Below, one piece after another: positions 1 through 62,505 of a stretch of DNA of 64,000 nt. Source of the DNA: Podarcis bocagei (Eukaryota). Where the stretch lies: the NCBI GenBank assembly GCA_964188305.1, contig OZ076901.1. One strand, written 5' to 3'. A model generated the notes under the pieces. It searched no databases. It saw only the letters and a list, made by a program, of their open reading frames with translations, and had not been told where the DNA came from. The translations under genes and the position numbers were made by a program. Numbering within the stretch: the first letter of the stretch is position 1; each line of letters starts with the position of its first letter.

Positions 1-438
1 GACAAGATCCAGGCCCCGGATTCCTTTAACGCAATATCCTTGGACATGGAGGGCCAGGCAATGGCCGACCTCCCCTCCCCCACACATCAATAAGCCAATG
101 CCTAACGGCCAAACCTTACAAGTTGTGATGATTGCTAAGAGGTAGGTGAAAACCAAGTGGCCAGTGCCAATCTGACAAATGGAAAAATTCCTACCTGTCC
201 CCTGTCCCAAGACAGACAACCAACCAAAGTCCAAAGCAAGACCAGAAGACATCTAAAATAAAAGGGTGGGTGGGCAGGTGTTTGACAGCGCAAAGCAGGT
301 GCACAGCACACGATGCACTGCCACTTATATACCCCCCCCCACGATCACCCCACTCAAAGTGATTGGCCAAAGAGGCATGGTGCCACCCCAGCATGGAAGG
401 ACTCACTCCACCCATGCAAGGGTGGGGTGAGCTGTGTT
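1..438 (-). mobile_element. ENE-bearing ~0.8 kb element, copy A (3' part runs off the window start)
   Basis: Shares GGATTCCTTTAACG and CCTTACAAGTTGTGA blocks and the U-loop motif with 45523-46336 and 58124-58917. TATATAAG on - at 324-331; 12-bp terminal hairpin CTCACTCCACCC/GGGTGGGGTGAG at ~402-431. Confidence 0.75.
141..195 (-). ncRNA. ENE-like RNA motif, copy A
   Basis: RNA: GGUAGG-AA-UUUUU-CCA...GUCAG(AUUGGCA)CUGGC...UGG-UUUU-CA-CCUACC. Confidence 0.6.
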
Positions 439-616
439 GAGGGCCTGCCCACAACCAGGACCATCTTTTAAGATGATCCAACATGTCCTGGAACTGGCCC
501 CGGAAACTACTTGGCAGCCAGTGCAGTTGCGCCAGGATTGGGGTTATATGTTCAAACTGTCTTGTTTTGCTGAGCAATCTGGCCACTGAATTTTGCACCA
601 GCAAAATTGAAGTTTC

Positions 617-10690: not shown

Positions 10691-10808
10691 AACCCTGGCC
10701 CCTTATGGAGTCCCCCTTTAGCATGCGGTCCTGCCATATGCAATTTCCACTCAAAGTAAACAAAGTTGTACAAAATGCCTAATGTAAGTAAGCCTTACTT
10801 CACTGTGG

Positions 10809-10870
10809 GAAAGGCAAAAAACCAAAAACCAAGGTGTCAACTGAGATTGAAAGGGGAAAAAAACCCTTTC
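10809..10870 (-). ncRNA. ENE-like RNA motif, copy B
   Basis: RNA: GAAAGG-G-UUUUUUU-CC...GG-UUUUUU-G-CCUUUC. Confidence 0.5.
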
Positions 10871-12370
10871 TGGCCCTGTCAACCAGCAGCCCAAATAGCT
10901 CAGTGAGGCTCTAATCTGTAGGTGGGTGGAAAGTTCATGGGGGGAAATGGCCCGGATCCCTAATGGGCATGGCCCTTTACAGGGCTCAACTCATGCTCTC
11001 ACTTGTGAGATCTCTCAGGATGATCCCATTCTGCAAGGTTTTATGAGAGCCAACAGGGAGACATGATTCCCATCTCCCCACTGCTTTCTGGGCCAAGATC
11101 ACCAGACAAAGCTGCTCCACATGCAATCATGCCTGGAACAAGGCTAGTCTATACTGCTGACCCTGTGCCTCCTTAAAAAGTACTTCAGACACCTAGCCCT
11201 GCTTTTCTAGTAATAAAGTGGATTCTTCACTTCCCTCAGAGCAATCACACCTCATTCTTTTGAATCACTGAAGACTGATCTCACTTCTAATCCTCCATGG
11301 TTTTTATCATTCCCCCCACCCCCTCATGGTCATGCTCTTGTCTTCATTCCTCCTGAGCTTCTCTCTAGAACTTGATAGCTCTTAAACTACATTCCATTGG
11401 CAAAGGAGAGAAATGCCTAGTTCACAGTTTATCATTTTTGTTTTAAAAAAGAAGCTTCTCCATATTAGATTTATCTGCAGTATTAAATCTCTCTTTGTTT
11501 TAATTAGTTCTGCCAAGTGATTCATGACATTTCATGACAATAATAGCAGCTCTGGGTATCTTTTTTTCCTTATTTAATCATTCTTCAGAGAAGTTTGGTC
11601 TGCAATGCATGGCTTTTAAGAACTCTGTGCTGATGTAAAAATGTTAATTTGCAAAATGAAAGTCGCTCCACTTTATCCTTTGCCAGACAGGTCTCCCCCA
11701 TGGCAAATCTACAGCTGTTAGGTGTCCTCTGAGGGGAGATGGGCTTTTGGCAAATATTTAGATTTATGACAGTTCAAAAGACAATTTAAACCTGCATAAT
11801 TAATTTTCATTAGAATTGATATGATGGATTTCATTTGTTTGGTAAATCATGATAATATACTGTAACTGCTTCAGCTCGAAGACAGCAATCATATGTTAAG
11901 AGGATATAGTGGAACAACGTCATGTGGCTGGTTCATTACTAAGATTGTAATTCTGCAATTGACAGTTCATTTATATATTTATTCAGGTAACAATTTAAAC
12001 CACGCCCTTCACGTTTTTGGATGGCAGTATCAGAAGGATCATATATTCCCATATTCTTGCCTTGAGATCATTATCAAAGGCCCTTCTCTGTGTGCCCTTG
12101 TGCAACCTGGGACACAAATATCTGAGAGAATAGCTGATTACATGCAGACCTGCCCATTTCCTTCAAATCTGCAGTCAAGGCCCTTCTGGTGATGTTTGCA
12201 CAGACAAAAATATGTAGCTAGTGGGCTTGGGAAAGGGCCTTTTTGTGGTGGCTCCACATCAGACAGCTTGAAGGTTGGTCTCCCAGGGGAGGACATTCTC
12301 AATGGCAGCCTCTAAGTTGCAGAACCCTCTCCCCACAGAGGTGTGTCTGGTACCTTCATTATACAACTTT

Positions 12371-12767
12371 TGTTGTTGTTTAGTCATTTAGTCGTATCCT
12401 ACTCTTCGTGACCCCATGGACCAGAGCATGCCAGGCCCTCCTGTCTTCCACTGCCTCCCGCAGTTTGGTCAAACTCATGCTGGTAGCTTCAAGAACACTG
12501 TCCCACCATCTCGTCCTCTGTCGTCCCCTTCTCCTTGTGCCCTCCATCTTTCCCAACATCAGGGTCTTTTCCAGGGAGTCTTCTCTTCTCATGAGGTGGC
12601 CAAAGTATTGGAGCCTCAGGTTCAGGATCTGTCCTTCCAGTGAGCACTCAGGGCTGATTTCCTTCAGAATGGATAGGTTTGATCTTCTGGCAGTCCACGG
12701 GACTCTCAAGATTCTCCTCCAGCACCAGAATTCAAAAGCATCAATTCTTTGGCGATCAGCCTTCTTT
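12371..12767 (-). mobile_element. BovB (RTE) LINE 3' fragment
   Basis: ORF MRVPWTARRSNLSILKEISPECSLEGQIL.LRLQYFGHLMRREDSLEKTLMLGK..GRQRTRW.D..RLND; (CAA)n tail. Confidence 0.92.
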
Positions 12768-19639: not shown

Positions 19640-19815
19640 AATAGGAACACAGGAAGCTGCCATGTGCTTGGTATATCTAGCTCAGTATTGCCTACACTGG
19701 TTGACAGCATCTCTCCAGGGTTTCAGATGTTCCCAACCCTACCTGGAGGTGCTAGAGATTTAATCTGGGACCTTCTGCATGCAAAGCAAATGCTCTACCA
19801 CTGAACTACAGCCCT
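19640..19815 (-). mobile_element. tRNA-derived SINE (Squam2-like)
   Basis: GGGACCTTCTGCATGCAAAGCAAATGCTCTACCACTGAACTACAGCCC is the reverse complement of the tRNA head. Confidence 0.75.
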
Positions 19816-26129: not shown

Positions 26130-27975
26130 TTTATTATTTATACTGTGCCCGTCTGGCTGGGTTTCCTCAACCACTCTGGGTGGCTTACAACATACCTAAA
26201 AACATAATAAAACATCAATCCTTAAAAACTTCCCTAAACAGGGCTGCCTTCAGATGTCTTCTAAAAGTCAGATAATTGTTTGTTTTCTTGACATCTAAAG
26301 GGAGAGTGTTCCACAGCGATGGAGCCACTACCGAGAAGGCCCTTGAACTGGCTCCCTGTAACTTCACTTCTCAGAGTAAGGGAATCAGCCGAAAACCCTC
26401 AGAGGAGGACCTCAGTGTCCAGGCTGAGTGATGGAGGTGGAGACGCTCCTTCAGGTATAGTGGGCCAAGGCCATTTAGGGATTTAAAGGTCAGCACCAAC
26501 ACTTTGTATTGCACTGGGAGCCAGTGAAGATCCTTTAGGACTGGTGTTATATGGCCCCGGTGGCCACTCACAGTCACCAGTTTAGCTGCCGCATTCTGGA
26601 TTAGTTGTAGTTTCTGAGTCACCTTCAAAGGTAGCCCCACGTAGAGTTCATTACAGTAGTCCAAGCGGGAGATAACCAGGATATGCACCACTCTGGTGAG
26701 ACAGTCTGTGGGCAGGTAGGGTCTCAGCCTGCGTACCAGATGGAGCTGGTAAACAGCTGCCCTGGACACAGAATTGACCTGCACACTTCCATGGACAGCT
26801 GTGAATCCAAAATGACTCCCAGGCTGCACACCTGATCTTTCAGGAGCATGGTTACCCTGTTCAGGATCAGGAAGTCCCCCACCCCCACCCACCCCCTGTC
26901 CCCCCAAAACAGTACATCTGTCTTGTCAGGATTCAACCTCAATTTGTTAGCCACCATCCATCCACCAACTGTCTCCAGACACTCACACAGGACCTTCACT
27001 GCCTTCACTGGTTCTGATTTGAAGGAGAGGTAGAGCTGGGTATCATCTGCATACTGATGAACACCCAGCCTAACCATTCTGATGATCACTCCCAGGGGCT
27101 TCATGTAGATGTTAAAAAGTATGGGACATAACTCTGAGGCACTCCACAAGTTAGAGCCCAGGGGTCCAAACACTCACCTCCCAAACCACTTTCTGGACAT
27201 GGCCCAGGAGAAAGGAGCAGAACCAGTGCCTAACAGTGCCCCAGCTCCTCTAGATAATCCAGTAGGATGTCATGGTTGATGGTATCAAAGGCCATTGAGA
27301 GATCCAGCAGAACTAGGAAACAGCTTTCACCTTTGTCCCTACCGCGCCAGAGATCATCAACCAGCACGACCAAAGTTGTTTCAGTCCCACGATTGAGGCC
27401 TAAATCCTGATCCAAATGGTCCGCATTCTCCAGGCATCCCTGGAGTTGTTCCGCAACCACCCGCTCAATCATTTTGACCAACAATGGAAGATTTGAGACT
27501 GGGCAATAGTTAGCCATATTGACCCGGTCCAAAGATGGTTTTTTAAGAAGCGGTTTAATAACCACCTCTTTTAGTAGGTCTGGGAAGGCTCCCTCACAGA
27601 GGGAAGCATTCACCACCCTGCGGAGCCCATTGCCCAACCCTTCCCGGCTTACTTTTATAAGCCAGGATGAGCAAGGAGACAGGTGATCGGTTTCACTCGT
27701 CCAAGCAGCCTGTCCACATCTTCAGAGGTAACAGATTGGAATTGATCCCATGCAACATGACCAGACAGGACCCTTGCACTTTTCTGCCCTGGCCCTGTTC
27801 CCACAGTCTATCTCTTTCCAAACCTGAGTGACTTTATCTGCAAAGAATTTTGCAAAATCATTGCAGGAGATCTTGGGGTCCCTACCAGGCCCCTGTGACG
27901 AAGGTGACTCTGTTAGATTGTGAACCACTGAAAGAGTCTCCTGATGCTGTTCTCTGCAGATGCAATAGAAGTGAC
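26084..27975 (-). mobile_element. 5'-truncated L2 LINE (frameshifted RT, 3'UTR, (ATT)n tail)
   Basis: ORFs: KPLLKKPSLD..NY.PVSNLP, LVLLDLS.AFDTINH, HQYADDTQLY, LRLNPDKT, SRLDYCN, HITPVLKDLHWLPV. Confidence 0.93.
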
Positions 27976-44934: not shown

Positions 44935-45370
44935 ATTATTATTATTATCTATTAGATTTATATACCGCCCTTCATCATGCCCTTCATCATGATATCTCAG
45001 GGCAGTTCACAAGAAAAATCACAACTAAATAAATAAATAAATAAAACAAGGCAACAAACCAATAGCCGCCGTCCTCCCACAAGCACATTTCAAAGGCTGT
45101 ATAATATTAATCAGCCCAAGGCCTGATCGAAAAGGAACAAGTTTGCTTGCCACCTAAAGATATACAATGAATGCACCAGGCAAACCTCGCTGAGGAGAGT
45201 GTTCCAGATACAGGGAGCCCACTGCATCAAAGGCCCGTTCTCGTGTTGCCACCCTCCGGACCTCACGTGGAGGAAGCACACGAAGAAGGGCCTCAGATGA
45301 TGAACGCAGAATCTGGGTCGGTTTATATGGGGAGAGGTAATCCTTGAGGGATTGCAGTCCTGAGCCATAA
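44935..45370 (-). mobile_element. L2 3' fragment
   Basis: ORF LKDYLSPYKPTQILRSSSEALLRV..RERAF; L2 tail ATTTATATACCGCCC. Confidence 0.8.
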
Positions 45371-45522
45371 TGGAGATTGGTTGAAAAAAATGCAAGAAAA
45401 ATGTTCAGCACAACACTTTCACATAGGGCTGAACAAACAGACTTGTACCATACAACAAAAAGAATGCATTTGGAAACAGGCCAGGTAACATAAAACCTCT
45501 AATGCAGTTAAAATTCCCATTT

Positions 45523-46336
45523 GCATGTCGAGGTCCCCAATCCACCCCCAAAATAACTCACAACGGACACGTAATTTTTGTTTAAGATTTTTGGCATGAT
45601 TTTGGCCACAACTTTATTCAAATACAAACCGTGAGTGGTTGTTTAGGCATTGGTTAAGACTATCTGTCCCCCCCCCCCCCACCTGGGGACAGAACTGACT
45701 TCCGGGCACCACCGAAAGACAGTGCGGGGGAAAGCAAGTCGGGGAGAAATGGAGCTGAGTCACAGGCCCTCAATTCTCATCCGCATGCTCCCCGAAGGCT
45801 TGCCGGCCCTAGTCCCATTCCAGGGATTGGACGAAAAGATGGCAAGCCCCAGGATTCCTTTAACGGAATTCCCTTTCCACAGCAACCTTGGAGGGGCAGG
45901 CCCAGCCTATCCTAACCCCTCCTCCACCAATTTATAACCAATGCCTAACCGCAACCTTACAAGTTGTGACGATTTGCTACGCAGTAGGCAAAAACCACCC
46001 AGCCGGCCAGTTTGCCAGGTGGAAAAATTCCTACCAGGCCCCTGCTCAAAGGCAGACGACACCATGACAGGCATAGCAAGGTCAACGCAATAACCCCTTA
46101 CTCTAGGGCGGGTGGGCGGGTGATCCGTTGCACGCAGCAAAAGAGAAAGTACAAGGCTGCGTGCAGAGTATTTAAACCTTTTACCCCTCCCACCAAAATT
46201 GCAACATAACTTTTGCCCCAGCAACTCAGCAATCCAATCACTGCCCCCTGGCCATCTTGGAGAACTTACCCAGCAACAAAGGGGGTGGCTCAGTAGACCC
46301 CACCGCAACACGTGCTCTCCCTGAAGGAGAACACGC
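45523..46336 (-). mobile_element. ENE-bearing element, best full copy C (814 bp)
   Basis: Flanked by TTT/TTT; ends GCATGT...ACACGC; terminal hairpin GTGCTCTCC/GGAGAACAC. On -: AAGATGGC, ATTGG, TTTAAATA (46169-46176), U-loop motif, AATAAA (45613-45618). Confidence 0.8.
45983..46035 (-). ncRNA. ENE-like RNA motif, copy C
   Basis: RNA: GGUAGG-AA-UUUUU-CCACCUGGC-AAACUGGCCG-GCUGGGUGG-UUUUU-G-CCUACU (6-bp lower stem, U5/U5 loop, 9-bp upper stem). Confidence 0.65.
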
Positions 46337-52788: not shown

Positions 52789-53145
52789 CTCTAGAGAGTA
52801 GAAGGGCTTTCTTATATATTTAGGGACCACCTCATGGGTAAATAACCAAAGATACAGCTCTTGGAGAAGGTTCTGAGAAGCCAAGAGAGTTCTTTCTCTA
52901 TATCAGGGATGTGAAACCTTGGGCCCTCCAGATGTCGCTGAACAGTTCATGAGCATAGTCCTTACGGGCTGAGGTTTATAGGAAGTGGAATCCAACAACA
53001 TACAGTATGTGCCTTCTCCAGGGCTGTGATGCTTCCTAAAAAGCATGGAAAAGGCAATCTTACCACTTCTCTTCAAGAAGGGCTAATACTGAAAGACCCT
53101 AAAAAAAGTGAGACCAGGGAGGATTTGGTCTAATCTGGACAGATC

Positions 53146-53327
53146 TTGAAGCTGAGGCTCCAATACTTTGGCCACCTCATGAGAAGAGAAGACTCCCTGG
53201 AAAAGACCCTGATGTTGGGAAAGATGGAGGGCACAAGGAGAAGGGGACGACAGAGGATGAGATGGTTGGACAGTGTTCTCGAAGCTGCTAACATGAGTTT
53301 GACCAAACTGCGGGAGGCAGTGGAAGA
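53146..53327 (+). mobile_element. BovB 3' fragment lacking the tail
   Basis: KLRLQYFGHLMRREDSLEKTLMLGK..RWLDSVLEA..KLREAVED. Confidence 0.9.
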
Positions 53328-54743: not shown

Positions 54744-55603
54744 GACTGCTCACCGCATTAACTGGGGGGCGGCTTTTGCATGGTTGTGCGCAGGCCCCCC
54801 TGGAGACTACGAGACCCCCGGCAAGGTAGCTGGCTTCACCGCCCCCCTGAGCCAGATACCTGGAGCTTCCCACTTAACCTCAGCAATCAAACAGTCCTGA
54901 CTGGGAGGGGGGGCGTTGCCATGGGAGTTGGCCAGGTAGAGTTAGGACCGCCAACACTCACAATTGAGGATGCAACTTACCTGTTGGTCCTCAGTCAGCT
55001 CCTGAACTTCCCCCACCCTGCCCTCCCTTAGTTTATGCCTTCTTTCACGGTTTAACCTTCTTCTTTACAGCTATGCAGGCACTGCTGCAGTCCTAGATGG
55101 TTGCTGTTGAGGGACCGGGAAGGAATTTCCCTGCATTGGCAGGTTTCGCCTTCCCCGTAGCAAAATGTCACAACTTTGGCGGTTTGTAGGCCTTGGGTGG
55201 AATACTTTAGTCTATCTTCCCTCAATGGGGGGGGGGGCATGAAGCGGTGACCCACGCCCCCCCCCCCCGTGGCAGCGATCACAGGGTTCCCCTTTAAAAG
55301 GGTTATTTTGAGGGGAGGCACTGGCCATACGCCAATGGGTTGTCAGTGCTCTACGATGCGGCAAAGTGGGAGGGCAGACATTCTCCAGAGGCAGTCCAAT
55401 CCCCACACATTCTGGATAACCCTGATGTTCCCCAGATCCCTGGCTGGGGACTGGCAGGGATAAACACCCAATGCCTAAGCCAAGGTCTTCCTACATCTGA
55501 GAATTTAATAAAGTTGTGGCCAATTTTAATCCCATAACACGTCCAGTGTCATTATTCCTCCCGGGGGTTGCCTGGGGCCTAGGGGGTCTCCACCTCTCCG
55601 TGC
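54744..55603 (+). mobile_element. ENE-bearing element, divergent full copy D (860 bp)
   Basis: Flanked by (GC)AAT on both sides inside the host MITE; U-loop motif; GTAGCAAAATGTCACAACTT; AATAAAGTTGTGGCCAA at 55507-55523 identical to copy C. Confidence 0.75.
55117..55155 (+). ncRNA. Minimal ENE-like RNA motif, copy D
   Basis: RNA: GGGAAGG-AA-UUU-C-CCUGC(AUUG)GCAGG-UUU-CG-CCUUCCC. Confidence 0.55.
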
Positions 55604-55716
55604 AATAAGGGTCTCCTAACAGCTCTCATGAACCTCCCTTTACAAAGTTATAGCTCTCATAATGATTTGAGGGAAGCCCATATGATTTAAAGTGGTATCG
55701 TAGTCCTTTAAATATA

Positions 55717-55860
55717 CAGTGGTACCTCGGCTTACATATGCATCAGGTTATGCATCAGCAGCAGGAGGCCCCATTAGCTAAAGTGGTTCAGGTTAAGAAC
55801 AGTTTCAGGTTAAGAACAGACCTCTGGAATGAATTAAGTTCTTAACCTGAGGTACCACTG
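55717..55860. mobile_element. Tc1/mariner MITE (deletion derivative)
   Basis: CAGTGGTACCTC/GAGGTACCACTG; TA TSD. Confidence 0.88.
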
Positions 55861-55960
55861 TACGTATGATGTGAATGTGGCCCTTGAGCAATTAACTGCA
55901 ACAATGCCCCTTTCTTGCATGGATGGGTAGAGAGGTATGGGAGGGCTCAGGCAGTGCTTA

Positions 55961-56395
55961 CAGTGGTGCCTTGCAAGATGAAATTAATTCGTTCTGCAAG
56001 TTTTTTCTTCTTGCGAGTTTTTCATCTTGCGAAGCACGGTTTCCCATAGGAATGCATTGAAAATCAATCAATGCGTTCCTATGGAGACCGTCCGGGGACA
56101 GAGGGGAAGCGCCGCGCGCCTTCCCCTCTGTCCCCGGACCTGTTTAAAGCAAGGGAAGGGGCAGCGGGGAGAATCGCTTCTCCCCGTTGCCGCCCCTTGG
56201 TTCAAAAGGGGTCCGGGGAGAGAGGGGAAGGCGCGCTGCGCTTCCCCGCTATCCCCGGAGCTTGTGGGGCAAGCTTCGTTTTGCGAAGCAAGCCCATAGG
56301 GAAATGCGTCTTGCGAAGCGGCTAAGAAAACGAAAAACTCCTTCGTCTAGCGAGTTTTTCGTCTTCTGAGGCGTTCGTCTTGCGGGGCACCACTG
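55961..56395. mobile_element. CpG-rich Tc1/mariner (Tigger-like) MITE
   Basis: CAGTGGTGCCTTGCAAGA/TCTTGCGGGGCACCACTG; TA TSD. Confidence 0.88.
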
Positions 56396-56430
56396 TATTG
56401 GTATGAGAACAGGAGCATTAGCCTTGAGCC

Positions 56431-56741
56431 AGGGGCGGAGGAAGGGGGTGCAGTGGGTGTGGGCCACCCCAGGTGTCACCACTGAGTGGGGTGGCAAAAT
56501 GCTGGGCAGCACTCACTGTGGGGCCTACAGCACGCCCAAACCACACGTCTCTGCTGAGAGTGATGATGTGGCTTGAGTGCTTGCAGACTCTGCATACCCC
56601 AAATGGTCCACCCGCTGGCTCCCCCCCCCCCAGCTGTAAGGTGGCTGAGTGGGAGGAGGCAGGCAGACTCCAGAGGCCCCGCTGAGCACCCTGCCCTGGC
56701 TGGCCCCACCCCAGGTGCCTGATCACCTTGCTCCATCGCTG
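56431..56741. mobile_element. GC-rich hAT-like MITE
   Basis: CAGGGGCGGAG.../...CTCCATCGCTG ends; CCACCCCAGGTG repeated; no clear TSD. Confidence 0.45.
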
Positions 56742-56759
56742 CGTATTTTCTTCCTTATA

Positions 56760-56834
56760 CAGTAGTACCTCGGGTTACAGATGCTTCAGGTTACATACGC
56801 TTCAGAATTAAGTTCTTAACCCGAGGTACCACTG
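56760..56834. mobile_element. 75-bp Tc1/mariner mini-MITE
   Basis: CAGTAGTACCTCGGGTTA/TAACCCGAGGTACCACTG; TA TSD. Confidence 0.88.
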
Positions 56835-58123
56835 TATAGAATATCTGTTCTTTATTAGGTGACCACTGAATTAAATTGCATCTCCCTTTCGCCAGGTATA
56901 GCCTGCAACATGGGGTCGGAATAACAGATAAGGCCTCTTTTAAATCCTTCATTGCAACTTAAAGAGAATATTGATTATATTATTTTAGTGTGTAAAGTAA
57001 AAGACTGTTTCTGGCCTTTATTTTAATGACCCTTTTCAGCATTGGCATCGACAAAAAAAGATGCTAGGAGGATTATAATTTTCCTCTACTGAGCTCTTAG
57101 AGACATACTTAGCCATTGTGGCAAACTTAGCCTGACATAATGATAATTTTAGGATGTTTTGTTCATCCTCTGATATTTATATTCATTCTTATACTTAGCA
57201 GAGCCTGCTTGACCTTTCCCTGTATGGCACAGAGGCCTACCACATTAATATAGAGTCTAATGCTATTTAAATGGATTCTAGCGTTCTTTAAGCATTAACA
57301 GAAAGAGCCCAATTCTCTCTCTAAATCACATGCACCTGTGTCCAAAGCTAGCTGTGTGACAAAGGGAAAAAAGCTACACTGTTGGCTTAGAATCAGAGTG
57401 AGCCACAATCTAAATGGAGCCCTGAAGTGGCTCAGTCGTAATGTTTTGGGGAAAAGTGGGGGGGGGACGTTCTGACTGACCCATTTCTTTACGCCAGGGA
57501 TGAATAACCAGTAGCCCCCCACCATGTTGCTGGATTCCACCTCCCATCATCCCCAGTCAGCGCATGGGAGTTGCACATGTGCTTCTTGTGCATTAATAAC
57601 AGCATTAATGACAGACACAGAAAACAGAACACAACAGTAAATAGAATGCAAAGTTAACCTAAATATAACTAAGGAAGGAAACTAAGGTAAGCAAAGGGAC
57701 ACTTCCTAAGTGACTATGACTAAGACAGACAACAAACATTTTCTTTGGGGTGGAGCATATAAGGATGGGACTGGGCTTAATCGGAAAAGGATTAGAAACA
57801 CACAGGTATATGGCCAGGTAAGGTACTCTGAAAGAAACAAGACACAAACTGAACAAATCCCACCAAGCTCCACCAAACTTTTTTTAAGAGACAGAACTTA
57901 CTGTACAAAGGAGTAAAAGCAACGTGAACTTTGCAAAGCGGGAAGGCATTTTAAAATTTCACCACCATAATGATGATGATTGATTGATTTTTTCCTAAAG
58001 GAACTCAAGGCAGCTTACAAATAAAAGCAAGAACCGCTAAAAACATCAAAAAAGCAATCATTAAAAAAACCACCAATTAAACACTGATGGAATTAAATAT
58101 ATATACAAACATAAAATCTGTTT

Positions 58124-58917
58124 GCGTGTTCAGACTCAGAGACCTCCCCCCTAAATAAACACACAATTGACTAAAATTTTAGTTTTGGGTTTTGGCAGAA
58201 TTTAGGCCACAACTTTGTTGATTACAGAAGGGGAGTGGTTGCATAGGCTCTGGTTCGACTAGCTCCCTGCACCCTTGCAGGCAGCACTGACCCAGGGCAC
58301 CAGTATAGGTCAGCCTAGGGTGAACACCTGAGGAAGGCGGAAAACCCGGGAACAGACTCTGTTCACTCCCCAGAAGCTTCCCTGGACTCAGGCATGGGCA
58401 CAAGCCCCTCTCGGGGGTTGACTAAACCAAGTTGAGTCCCTGGATTCCTTTAACGGAATGCCCTTCACATAGGGATGGTGAGACCGTTCTCCCATCCCTA
58501 TCACCTGAACCAGAGCCTATCCGCAACCTTACAAGTTGTGACGATTTGCTACATGGCAGGCTAAACCCAAAGGGCAACAGTCCATCAGCCAACTGGGGAA
58601 AATTCCTGCCTTGTCCCTGTCCCAACGACAGACGACACACAACGGCATAGCAAGGTCAATTGCAAAATACCCTAAATATAGGGAGAGGTGGGCGAGTGTT
58701 CTGAATGCACGAGCCAAAAGAGGAAGCCCTGGGTCACGTGCATAGGCATATATAGATCCCTCGATCTGTTTAGACTGCACCCCATTGGCCAGATTGCACC
58801 CTGCAGTGAGGGACCTACCAATCGGGTGTTGTGGCTGTCCAATATACCCACTCATAACACAGGAGTTCAGTCTCCAGGTCTCACCACAACAAGTGCCCTC
58901 TTTGAGGGAAGACATGC
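58124..58917 (-). mobile_element. ENE-bearing element, full copy E (794 bp)
   Basis: Flanked by TTT/TTT; ends GCGTGT...ACATGC; terminal hairpin CCCTC/GAGGG; TATATAT at 58748-58754; poly(A) signal reads AACAAA (58214-58219). Confidence 0.8.
58555..58610 (-). ncRNA. ENE-like RNA motif, copy E
   Basis: RNA: GGCAGG-AA-UUUU-CCC...GUUGGCU...GGG-UUU-AG-CCUGCC. Confidence 0.55.
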
Positions 58918-61039
58918 TTTAAAACATACCAATAATTATAATAAAAAGAGCACAGCACCAGCCCTTTAATTAAAAGCAGTCATGTTCCCCTGCTGGCAGA
59001 AGGACAACAAGGAGGGTGCCAGTCTAGGTTCTCCAGGGAGAGGGCTCCAAAGTCTGGGAGCGGCCACTGAGAAGGGTCTCTCCCAAGCCCCCACCAAGCA
59101 TGCCAGGACTAAGAGAAGGGTCTCCTGCAAAGGAGGCTTGTATGAAGGAATGCCATCTTTCAGATAGCTTGGACCAAAGTTGTGTAGGTCATAACTAGGA
59201 CTTTAAACTGTGCCCAGAAACAGACCGGTAACCAAGGAAGCTATTCTAACAAGGGAGTATAATGCTCTCTATAACACCCCCCCCCCAGCACTGTTAATGG
59301 AGAGTGTTGAGTGTGATTCTAGCCTCCAATGTACTTCTGTGGAGAGTGAGTTCCACAGCTTAAGGGCCATCACAGCGGTCAGTGTCCCTTCCCAGCTTAG
59401 GTTCTGATGCTGGAGAAAATACTAAGAGGGCCTCTTTGCTGATCTTATCACCTGAGATGGTTTACAGAGAAGGAAGCAGTCTTTCAGATATTTGGTCTGA
59501 ACTATTATCATGCCATCTGCAATGTTCTTCCTGAAGGTGGAAAGTCAAAATTATGTGAGAGCGGTATCTAGGAACCAGGAAATGACAGTATTCAATAGGG
59601 TTATATTCATTTAATATTGACATGGGATTCTAAGAAATTAGCTGGAAAACTGCACCATGATGGTGATGGCGATGCTGTGAACATGTATGAGGCTTTACAG
59701 AGCAAGAAAAAGACAGATTCACTACCCAACAGAGCTTGCGATCCAACGTTGGCAGGCAAAAGGAGGGGATGGAGTCAAAGATACCTAGAGGAAAAATGTT
59801 TATATGCTCCATTTCAGTAGAGAATGAGGGCTAAAGGATAAAAAATTACACTGGCCTTTCTCATCAAGCTGATATTTTATGGTCTGTAACCAAATGCTGT
59901 TAAATGATTGCATCTTGCTAAAGTGTGTAAATCAATAAAGTAAAATAATAATAGTACAGCACATATTTCACTATTATCAGTCTCTTCAGTTAAGAAGTGC
60001 TGTCCTGCTAAAGAAAGAAAACTGCACAGATGCAGCAAATTTGTAAAGCATCTGTTGTGTCTCTGCGTGATTAGGCTACCTAAAAGGAACCAGCATATAG
60101 GCATATGATGAGACAGTCAGTTAATGGTGCAGCTAACCCCTTTGTGCTGTGGAAGAAAGCTTTTGTTTCTACACTTTGATTTGCACTATTGCAGGCCTGT
60201 AAACCCTTTTATTGCTTCGTAGTAAAGCTGGGGGAAGGGCTAATCTTTTCACCAGTCTTCTGCAATGGTTTCTGATGTTTATCTTAGCTCCTCCCTTACA
60301 AATATTGTTGTTGTTGTTGTTTAAAAAACATTTTAGAAGGTTAAGACTCCACTGCTATGAAAGATATATCCTCTCTCCCCCCCCCCCCCGCAAAAGTTTG
60401 GGAATAAACAATCTCATTAGCATTTGTTTTTCTAAGGGACACTTCTTTGATAATTTCATTTTACAGCAGGATGGGCTTACCATTTGCATTTAAATGAAGG
60501 CTGCTGAAGGAAGATGCAGAATTCAATTTTATCTAGCTGATAAGATCCTGGCAATGAAGATTACAGCTCATGGTTTGAAACAAACCAGAGCTCACTAATC
60601 ACTTCACCCTTACAAGTTGCTTGGATCTTGAAAATGATCAAATGAAATATGGTGTCTTTAGTAGCATGTACAGAAACTCCAAAAAAGCAAAGAAAACACA
60701 GTTCATGATTACACTACAATGTCATAACATCAATTGATCAGGACTGGCAAGTTCAGACAAACATGGATGGATATTGTGATTGACCACCATTGAAATCCTG
60801 AAAACAGAGGGTTTGATTGATTGTTTTGGCAATGATGAAAATGAATTCAAATATGCATTAGCACTTTCAGCTGTCCTCTATTCCAGGTTTCGTTTGACTT
60901 TACACAAGCCACATCTGCTTTGATCTATCACATAGGCCTCATGTAGAACACAGTTAAATAACATTGTATTGTGCAGAATGTGCCTCTGAGAAAGATCAAG
61001 TTAGAATGTTGAAGTCATAATGCAGCACACATTGCCCTG

Positions 61040-61765
61040 GCTGGTGTGACCCATGAACGCAGCAAAAGAACAAGAATATACAATGGTGACGGGATAAAAT
61101 CGGGCCAAATGTTAATGATAGCAGCAAGCAGCATGATGGTTGGCATGGGTCCCAGGATCAGTTCACCATTCCGCAAGCCTCATGTTGATAGAATGGATCC
61201 GCCAGGTTTGGGCCACCCCAAACCTGTTCCATGGGAGTTGGCCAATGTTGAACCTTGCCATGGTAGAAGCCAAGCAAGCAAGGTCTCACTGGGCAACCAG
61301 GGTGCAGATTCCTATCAGGCAGATACCTCAAACTTGGGGTGCTGTGGTCAATCTTCCCCTTATGGGCCCCCCCTATACTATGTTGATCCTGCCCAGTGCC
61401 ATTTCCACCCTCATACAAACAACGTTCTTCACCTAACAAGGAAAGGCCATAATTTCACAGAGGGAAAGGTGAAAAAACCCAAACAAGTGCCAAACAGGTT
61501 GAGAGAGAAAAATTCCTTTCCAGCCCTGTCAGCCCACAACCCAAAATTGCTCAGTGAAGGCTCTAACCCGAGGGTGCGTGGGTGGGAAGCTCACAAAACA
61601 AAATGTCCCTGAACTCCAGGGAAAGCAGCCTTATATAGGCATTTACCTCCCCATGCAAGGGCTCATGGGGCAGGTTTTTCCCTTGAGCCTATCACACAGA
61701 GAGGATTTTGCTGCCATCTGTGGGCACAGCGCTGCCAGGCAAAGGTGTCCCGTGCTTATTGGGCA
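61040..61765 (-). mobile_element. ENE-bearing element, copy F (older subfamily); boundaries approximate
   Basis: TATATAAG on - at 61630-61637, CCCACCCA.GCACCC block, U-loop motif; colinear with copy B. Confidence 0.6.
61463..61521 (-). ncRNA. ENE-like RNA motif, copy F
   Basis: RNA: GGAAAGG-AA-UUUUU-CUC...UUUGGCA...GGG-UUUUUU-CA-CCUUUCC. Confidence 0.55.
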
Positions 61766-61799
61766 CAGAAGAAGGCCTGTCATCAGAATAGTAGATGTC

Positions 61800-62505
61800 T
61801 GTGAAGATTATAAAGGGTCTGGAGACCAAACCTTATGAAGAATGGTTGAGAAAGTTGGGTATGTTCAGCCTGGAGAAAAGTAGAAGCTTGTTTTCTGCTG
61901 CTTCCGAAGTTAGGACTCAAACCAATGGATTCAAATGACTAAAAAAAAAAAAAGAAGAAATTCCAGCTAAACACTTTCTGGTGTTGGGCTAATCGAGAGT
62001 GGAATGGAGAACCTTGTAAAGTGGTGGTTTTAAATAGAGGTTTAAACAGAGGCCATCTGCCAGGGATTCTTTACCTGTGATTCCTTCATTGCAGGGAATT
62101 GAACTGTTATTATTGTTTTTGTTTTTAGTATATTTATACTCCACTTTTTATCCCCAGTGATACTCAAGGTGGCTTACAGATAAAAATTTGTTGTTGTTGT
62201 TGTTTAGTCGTTTAGTCGTGTCTGACTCTTCATGACCCCATGGACCAGAGCATGCCAGGCACTTCTGTCTTCCACTGCCTCCCGCAGTTTAGTCAAACTC
62301 ATGTTGATAGCTTCGAGAACACTATCCAACCATCTCATCCTCTGTCGTCCCCTTCTCCTTGTGCTCTTAAAAATAAGAACCACTAAAACATTGAAAAAAT
62401 GATAACTTAAAAAAACAATTAAACATTGATCCATATGGGACTGCTGCATATTCCTGCTTTGCAGGGTGTTGGACTAGATGATTCTTCCAACTCTATGGTT
62501 CTATG
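61800..62505 (+). mobile_element. CR1 3' end fragments, interrupted by an L2 tail and BovB
   Basis: AAGGGTCTGGAGACCAAACCTTATGAAGAATGGTTGAGAAAGTTGGGTATGTTCAGCCTGGAGAA (KGLE.K.YEE.L..LGMFSLEK); CR1 terminus TTCCAACTCTATGGTTCTATGA. Confidence 0.75.
62188..62365 (-). mobile_element. BovB 3' end
   Basis: TRRRGRQRMRWLDSVLEA..VHGVMKSQTRLND; (CAA)n tail. Confidence 0.9.

Follow-up and report, generated by a model that had tools for sequence, protein, structure and literature searches.

Elements for nuclear expression (ENEs) are RNA clamps that also occur in a few herpesvirus and insect-virus RNAs and in MALAT1 and NEAT1, and in 2016 Tycowski and colleagues reportedly found them in “numerous non-metazoan and one fish species.” One review (PMC7583470) defines the ENE as a U-rich internal loop next to G-C pairs that forms five U.A-U triples together with A-minor triples, and the flanking G-C pairs are essential (PMC12501189). 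Most of the approximately 200 known ENE motifs come from plants and fungi (PMC12501189, the 2025 Evade paper), and the transposon ENEs named in reviews, PMC7583470 among them, belong to plants, fungi, slime mould, and stickleback retrovirus-like elements. Some of them lie inside long terminal repeats (LTRs; PMC13541005), and protection from deadenylation is the benefit proposed for the transposon (PMC12501189). Here, we describe an ENE-like hairpin in six diverged copies of a dispersed repeat within 64,000 nucleotides (nt) of DNA from the lizard Podarcis bocagei (GenBank assembly GCA_964188305.1, contig OZ076901.1), a stretch that we call the window. An earlier note, made from the letters of this DNA, had proposed the hairpin as an RNA-stabilising triple helix of a mobile element. 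Its view that plants and fungi supply most known transposon ENEs agrees with the reviews. The similar motif that it mentions in some vertebrate CR1 3′ untranslated regions (UTRs) gained no support from the literature searched, in which we found no ENE in a reptile transposon or in CR1 3′ UTRs; the reviews name no amniote transposon ENE.

Direct reading confirmed the hairpin at all six sites and on the strands that the earlier note had given, and the lower stems listed there were correct to the base. All six share one order: lower stem, AA (G in copy B), U-tract, upper stem with apical loop, U-tract, spacer of 1 to 2 nt, and lower stem. The copies are named A to F along the window. In copy A (140-196, minus strand), the lower stem GGUAGG/CCUACC is extended to AGGUAGG/CCUACCU and is followed by AA, U5, an upper stem of CCA/UGG, U4, and a CA spacer; the 3′ part of this copy is beyond the window edge. 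Copy B (10808-10871, minus) has GAAAGG/CCUUUC, G, U7, an upper stem of CC/GG only, which is weak, a 3′ tract of U6 within U5GGU6, and a G spacer. The copy C hairpin (45982-46036, minus) consists of (U)GGUAGG/CCUACU(G), AA, U5, CCACC/GGUGG, U5, and a G spacer, while that of copy D (55117-55155, plus), shortened in its apical part, has GGGAAGG/CCUUCCC, AA, U3, CCUGC/GCAGG, U3, and a CG spacer. Copy E (58554-58611, minus) reads GGCAGG/CCUGCC, AA, U4, CCC(AG)/(UU)GGG, U3, and an AG spacer, and copy F (61463-61521, minus) reads GGAAAGG/CCUUUCC, AA, U5, CUC/GGG, U6, and a CA spacer. The lower stems are 6 to 7 base pairs (bp) long.

Above the loop, each U-tract runs straight into two C-G pairs in every copy (with U.G once, in copy F). 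On the lower side there are two invariant G-C pairs, set off from the U-tracts by the AA on the 5′ strand and by 1 to 2 nt on the 3′ strand, and a purine-purine mismatch (A.G, A.A, or G.G) is conserved below the U-loop. Like a PAN-type ENE, the loop has U-tracts on both of its strands and is left open by RNAalifold. The lengths of the 5′ and 3′ U-tracts correlate across the copies (r = 0.82, n = 6, p = 0.046, uncorrected for relatedness), which is suggestive only.

The repeat family is well delimited in the window. An nhmmer search with a profile of the six copies matched exactly these six places, and a simple ENE-shape descriptor matched this family only, versus 0.05 matches per dinucleotide shuffle. 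As the earlier note had suggested, we built a covariance model of the junction that contains the hairpin from the six copies and ran it with filters off over both strands; it recovered only the six copies, at 68 to 105 bits, versus 11 bits for the next best hit. Over approximately 300 aligned bases, pairwise identity ranged from 43 to 69%, with 64 to 69% within the groups A, C, and E and B and F and 43 to 53% otherwise. The description of flanking sequence as poorly alignable between subfamilies also holds, with 43 to 50% identity between subfamilies.

Given a plain MAFFT alignment of approximately 140 nt per copy, RNAalifold returned a closing helix (P1), a small hairpin (P2), and the lower and upper stems of the ENE-like hairpin, with the AAU5/U5N loop unpaired. 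In the whole junction, 86 to 87% of the cells form standard pairs, compared to 35 to 53% when the partners were slid by 1 to 3 columns, a control that retains the relatedness of the sequences. Pairs that changed on both sides numbered 11 to 12 in the proposed structure versus 1 to 5 in the slid controls. None of 500 shuffles, which ignore relatedness, equaled the observed share of paired cells or the observed score for covariation. Across the six copies, 95% of the lower stem is paired, and one of its positions is U-A in A and C, C-G in E, and A-U in D, B, and F, as the earlier note had read it; the next position is G-C in A, C, D, and E or A-U in B and F. The statement that the upper stems differ and yet pair also holds; direct reading showed the third pair to vary among A-U, C-G, and U-A. 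P1 reads UUGCUAUG/CGUAGCAA in A, C, D, and E versus UCACUG/CAGUGA in B and F.

We then examined which columns do not change. Of 114 positions in the junction, 24 are invariant, and 12 of these fall within the 19-column core AGG-AA-UUU / UUU-N-CCU, with the other 12 spread over the remaining 95 (Fisher p = 1e-5). This implies that the U-tracts and the neighbouring G-C pairs are the best-conserved part of the junction, and the suspicion that the U-tracts might be no more conserved than their flanks did not hold. The structure also contains conserved U.G and G.U pairs. These would be A.C on the opposite strand, which implies that the strand we read is the RNA strand. The hairpin, P1, and a long-range helix, LR2, described below, covary. 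From the compensatory changes and the conserved G.U pairs, we are highly confident that selection acts on the hairpin as a structure in the RNA of this strand, as had been proposed.

The ENE-like hairpin is one arm of a three-way junction that also holds P2 and is closed by P1. In copy C, the 5′ strand of P1 (UUGCUAUG) lies at 46072-46079 and its 3′ strand (CGUAGCAA) at 45974-45981, both on the minus strand. Because the 3′ strand of P1 is contiguous with that of the ENE lower stem, the two helices probably stack. Beyond the junction, in copies C, D, and E, a block lying immediately 3′ of the ENE can pair with the region of the poly(A) signal approximately 360 nt downstream. The first helix of this pairing, LR1, is GUCACAACUU/AAGUUGUGGC, with 10 of 10 bp formed and the sequence identical in the three copies; it begins 3 to 4 nt after P1, and its 3′ strand starts with the last two A's of AAUAAA. 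In copy C (minus strand), the LR1 5′ strand is at 45961-45970, 3 nt after P1, and the signal together with the 3′ strand occupies 45605-45618, where AAUAAA (45618-45613) overlaps the pairing strand (45614-45605). In copy D (plus strand), the corresponding positions are 55167-55176 for the 5′ strand and 55507-55520 for AAUAAA with the 3′ strand. In copy E (minus strand), they are 58533-58542 and 58206-58219, the latter with a degenerate poly(A) signal, AACAAA, overlapping the LR1 strand. Partition-function folding of the whole predicted transcript gave LR1 a pairing probability of 0.9 to 1.0 in C and E.

A second long-range helix, LR2, lies inside the first. It has 14 bp and joins UUAGGCAUUGGUUA at 45935-45948 to UAACCAAUGCCUAA at 45643-45656 in copy C (minus), 55186-55199 to 55465-55478 in copy D (plus), and 58508-58520 to 58243-58255 in copy E (minus). 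LR2 is 95% paired, compared to 22 to 49% when slid, and shows five compensatory pairs among the three copies, for example, UUAGGCAUUGG/CCAAUGCCUAA in C versus AUAGGCUCUGG/CCAGAGCCUAU in E. The candidate CA dinucleotides for cleavage are 9 to 21 nt after the hexamer and 2 to 13 nt beyond LR1. The central domain between the long-range strands, approximately 300 nt, has many alifold pairs with compensatory changes of its own. It includes a second small covarying hairpin at approximately 45860-45875 (minus), 58445-58460 (minus), and 55300-55315 (plus), which reads AUUCC-GUUAAA-GGAAU in A, C, and E versus CCC(U)-loop-(A)GGG in D, B, and F.

Two copies of the carrier repeat are complete. Copy C spans 45523-46336 (minus, 814 bp) with the ends GCGTGT...ACATGC, and copy E spans 58121-58920 (minus, 800 bp) with GCATGT...ACACGC; the consensus of these ends is GCRTGT...ACAYGC, with AAA on each flank. 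The two are homologous over the full length of C (nhmmer, 1-814 versus 58916-58147), and copy D is without the first ~195 nt of the element. From 5′ to 3′, the repeat holds a subterminal hairpin, CCAAT, TATA, a C-rich CCCACC block, the P1/P2/ENE junction, a very conserved block directly after the ENE, the central domain, and a poly(A) signal. CCAAT and TATA are approximately 160 nt from the 5′ end, and AAUAAA is approximately 95 nt from the 3′ end. Copies A, C, E, and F have aligned TATA-like boxes, and the alignment is weak in B. The boxes read ATATAAG in A, TTTAAATA in C (46169-46176, minus), TATATATG in E, and TATATAAGG in F, and copy C has an inverted CCAAT at 46234-46239 (minus). The poly(A) signal is AAUAAA in C and D and AACAAA in E, followed by a GU-rich tract.

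No open reading frame (ORF) is common to the copies, and the carrier is noncoding. We considered a coding element, as ORFs of 134 and 128 amino acids overlap C and E, and rejected it: these ORFs differ in frame relative to the hairpin and share no conserved protein. With promoter boxes, a poly(A) signal, and no shared ORF, the unit looks like an intronless RNA polymerase (Pol) II noncoding mini-gene. A small Pol III RNA ending at the first T5 was also rejected: covariation of the lower stem and of P1 spans both T-runs, and the transcript must therefore extend past them.

The class of the element is less clear-cut. A solo LTR would fit the U3-R-U5-like layout; an LTR would be expected to end in TG...CA and to have a target-site duplication of 4 to 6 bp, and here the ends are GCRTGT...ACAYGC and the only flanks in the two complete copies are the AAA. 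Paired copies or an internal coding region were absent from the window. Competing with the LTR-like layout are the 6-bp inverted ends, the AAA flanks, and, at the end nearest the promoter, a covarying hairpin in subterminal position; canonical Helitron ends (TC...CTRR) are absent from the element. This hairpin lies upstream of TATA, at 46300-46336 (minus), 58885-58920 (minus), and approximately 440-480 (minus), and its stem sequence is wholly different in C (GUGUUCUCC/GGAGAGCAC), E (CCCUC/GAGGG), and A (GGAUCAUCUU/AAGAUGGUCC). It bears on the class of the element. As the predicted transcript does not include it, it points tentatively to a function in a longer RNA or a single-stranded DNA intermediate. 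A 22-base gapped pattern hit 35 metagenome contigs and no viral contigs; none of the 35 matched the family profile in nhmmer, and all of them are therefore chance matches.

Taken together, these data define a real, covarying, ENE-shaped RNA structure in a mechanistically sensible context. We propose, at about even chances, that it is an ENE of the PAN type, carried by the intronless Pol II noncoding RNA of a transposon, and that it clamps the poly(A) tail. The context fits an ENE because the unit looks like an intronless Pol II one and its poly(A) signal would be brought to the hairpin by the long-range helices. In this model, the dispersed repeat of approximately 800 bp would be its own intronless Pol II transcription unit, with CCAAT, TATA, a structured RNA, and AAUAAA. 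The ENE-like hairpin and P2 would branch from the junction closed by P1, and LR1 and LR2 would pair with the sequence around and upstream of AAUAAA, closing off the central domain. Through this pairing, the predicted cleavage and poly(A) site would come to within 2 to 13 nt of the P1/LR1 junction at the base of the ENE stack. The fold would thus place the predicted start of the tail at the foot of the P1-plus-lower-stem stack of approximately 15 bp.

From there, the nascent poly(A) tail would run up the stack, making A-minor contacts to the invariant G-C pairs, and approximately five of its adenosines would insert between the facing U-tracts as U.A-U triples. The triplex would be capped above by the two C-G pairs that are invariant in the upper stem, and the purine-purine mismatch below the loop may serve as a hinge. 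The tail would enter from the lower stem toward the upper stem. This polarity suits the arrangement of known ENE structures, in which the 3′ U-tract makes the Watson-Crick pairs and the 5′ U-tract the Hoogsteen pairs. A tail held in this way would be shielded from deadenylation-dependent decay, which would raise the steady-state level of the element RNA. We tentatively go one step further, with somewhat less confidence, and suggest a self-contained 3′-end protection module: a single-domain ENE with a purine-mismatch hinge in a three-way junction, to which long-range helices of at least 24 bp would hand the tail over approximately 390 nt. In this same tentative extension, the long-range helices would also partly sequester AAUAAA.

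Several observations weigh against the clamp. The evidence base is six related sequences in a single window, and these sequences also served to derive the structure. The start of transcription and the poly(A) site are predicted, and we infer the cleavage site, the triplex, and the stabilisation; poly(A) binding and RNA stabilisation by the hairpin are putative. In linear sequence, the hairpin is approximately 390 nt from the likely poly(A) site. LR1 is missing from the minimum free energy (MFE) fold of copy D, and equivalent long-range helices in the B and F subfamily were not defined, as RNAduplex gave inconsistent partners only. At the level of the hairpin, the MFE fold of the whole predicted transcript has it with the loop open in copy E, but the copy C fold pairs the AA with two U's, so that the loop shrinks. 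Copies D and E have only 3 to 4 U's per strand, and copy B is nearly without an upper stem, with its own MFE favouring a competing local hairpin. Isolated hairpins were not unusually stable (z = −0.1 to −1.9), and the lower G-C pairs do not abut the U-tracts, with AA or 1 to 2 nt in between.

The database comparison belongs with these points. In the window as a whole at gathering score, and at E ≤ 10 in copy C and in 54900-61900, Rfam 15 gave no ENE, mascRNA, or MALAT1 match, which is weak evidence given that the PAN-type ENE content of Rfam is uncertain. The comparison with Rfam models that the earlier note had suggested thus found no family matching any copy. The scans at E ≤ 10 returned chance-level matches only (anti-hemB, HCV_J750, and microRNA [miRNA] models on a GC-rich stretch). 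We consider the hairpin a plausible but incomplete member of the ENE class: its loop is of the ENE kind, G-C pairs adjoin the loop on the upper side only, the predicted 3′ end would come near only through the long-range helices, and a match to a model is absent.

A different reading accepts the selected structure but takes the U-rich loop as a protein-binding or RNA-RNA docking site rather than a poly(A) clamp. Candidate U-tract binders would include hnRNP C, HuR, and PTB; AAUUUUU also resembles RAU4-6GR and could be an Sm-like site, or the loop could be a signal for packaging, export, or dimerisation. Covariation and conservation, after all, show selection on the shape and on the U's, not what the U's contact. 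AAUUUUU is invariant in four of the six copies, the spacer nucleotides part the lower G-C pairs from the U-tracts, unlike in the published ENE definition, and the silence of Rfam points the same way. However, facing U-tracts of matched length, bracketed by G-C pairs, suit a U.A-U triplex, and a binder of single strands needs none of this. The Sm consensus requires a single-stranded stretch between hairpins with a G following the U-run; here the U-run is followed by a paired C. Nor does this reading offer an obvious role for the long-range helices, which would place the poly(A) site at the foot of the hairpin. On balance, we regard this reading as unlikely, although deserving of serious attention.

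We also weighed a MALAT1-like variant, in which the U-tracts would capture an encoded A-run just downstream of LR1, as a blunt or internal triplex or as a duplex, and not the tail. Such runs exist: CCAAAA and GCCAAAAA in copy C and GCCAAAA in copy E. In these two copies, A-runs of at least four occur only downstream of the poly(A) signal, 2 to 30 nt after LR1, and their length loosely follows that of the U-tracts (A5 with U5/U5 in C and A4 with U4/U3 in E). The A-runs are not conserved in D, B, or F, though, and no tRNA-like or RNase P-type 3′-processing element was detected, the only tRNA call being at 19744-19815. In addition, the canonical AAUAAA and its GU-rich downstream tract predict ordinary polyadenylation. 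We consider capture of an encoded A-run improbable.

Least probable of all, and in our view very improbable, is that the hairpin has no present function and was merely inherited, its covariation being an artefact of few related sequences or of a DNA constraint such as a cruciform or a transposition signal: the small sample, the circularity, the shuffle control blind to relatedness, and the unremarkable stability of isolated folds would allow it, but at 43 to 50% identity between subfamilies, a neutral stem of 6 to 7 bp would not stay perfectly paired in all six copies with three pair types at one position, the slid-partner controls retain relatedness and still drop to 35 to 53% paired, the conserved G.U pairs favour RNA of this strand over DNA, and half of all invariant columns fall in the ENE core.

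If the poly(A) clamp is correct, amniotes would join the hosts of transposon-borne poly(A) protection, with the lizard hairpin as their first transposon ENE. RNA tertiary architecture, not linear proximity, would then couple the clamp to the tail, a new form of coupling to a distant poly(A) site. Searches limited to the last ~100 nt or to strictly adjacent G-C pairs would miss a class of elements, and current ENE search models would be too narrow. A compact module of approximately 110 nt with its long-range helices could also be of use for RNA-stability engineering.

Other features of the window were recorded alongside the repeat. The tRNA-like sequence at 19744-19815 (minus) is the only match in the window at the Rfam gathering score (42.8 bits); it has several nonstandard pairs and is probably the tRNA-derived head of a short interspersed element (SINE) rather than a tRNA gene. 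Broken reverse-transcriptase ORFs at 26371-27637 (minus; Pfam RVT_1, E = 1e-8 and 9e-8 in two fragments) look like a decayed long interspersed element (LINE)-like element unrelated to the ENE-bearing repeat. Near copies B, D, and F is a younger repeat (12370-12634, 53137-53327, and 62194-62367) of approximately 100 to 190 bp, whose copies are 91 to 96% identical; it is an independent, recently active element. The ORF motif ...RAF(D/S)(A/V)...PRLW...P.E.R.APSL, which we take to be typical of squamate SINE-derived sequence, occurs at 45154-45411 (minus) and 58966-59130 (minus). As these ORFs are downstream of copy C and upstream of copy E, they are separate insertions. The GC-rich stretch at 56036-56258, probably a repeat of low complexity or a palindromic one, draws many weak, subthreshold matches to unrelated miRNA models from both strands.

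Of the known systems, the ENE of PAN RNA from KSHV (Kaposi's sarcoma-associated herpesvirus) is the natural standard. Both it and the lizard hairpin are stem-loops whose internal loop, with G-C pairs on either side, holds U5 tracts that face each other and leave room for approximately five triples (PMC7583470), and both have extra unpaired nucleotide(s) on the 3′ strand beside the lower stem. Both also belong to intronless Pol II noncoding polyadenylated transcripts, predicted in the case of the lizard unit. Unlike the KSHV element, the lizard hairpin has the AA between the lower stem and the 5′ U-tract, forming a purine-purine mismatch with the 3′ spacer, and is one arm of a three-way junction. 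Its poly(A) site is approximately 390 nt away, compared to approximately 100 nt in PAN RNA, and would come near only through the long-range helices. The two share no sequence or Rfam-level similarity.

The transposon ENEs of plants and fungi, of one fish retrovirus-like element, and of Arabidopsis Evade/Copia93 (Tycowski 2016; Li 2025) resemble the lizard hairpin in placing a U-rich internal loop in the polyadenylated intronless RNA of a mobile element, again with the lizard unit being a prediction. Plant ENEs are mostly double-domain, in contrast to the single domain found here, and the known transposon ENEs differ further in that the lizard carrier is without an ORF and its host is a squamate. 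To our knowledge, none of them has been described as receiving its tail through long-range helices.

The MALAT1 and MEN-beta triple helix is likewise a U-rich stem-loop in a vertebrate noncoding RNA, and protection of the 3′ end is what we propose for the lizard hairpin too. In 2017, Zhang and colleagues reportedly described MALAT1-like loci (tancRNAs) of Anolis. Multicopy MALAT1-like modules have been reported in anole lizards (PMC10869381; PMC12941219). Modules of this type have U-tracts interrupted by C or G, an encoded A-rich tract, and a downstream tRNA-like RNase P substrate, whereas the lizard U-tracts are uninterrupted, AAUAAA is present, and no tRNA-like structure was detected. We therefore rejected a tancRNA-type module: there was no mascRNA-menRNA or tRNA match at any of the six copies, and with uninterrupted U-tracts and no tRNA-like element, the lizard hairpin is not MALAT1-like, and the anole loci are distinct from it.

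Finally, retroviral R-region structures such as the HIV-1 poly(A) hairpin and the HTLV-1 RexRE, which bridges signal and site, regulate the use of poly(A) signals. The lizard element is similar in that its pairing involves the AAUAAA region within an LTR-like U3-R-U5 layout. The retroviral structures are without a U-rich triplex loop, and in contrast to them, the lizard pairing would mainly juxtapose the 3′ end and the hairpin.

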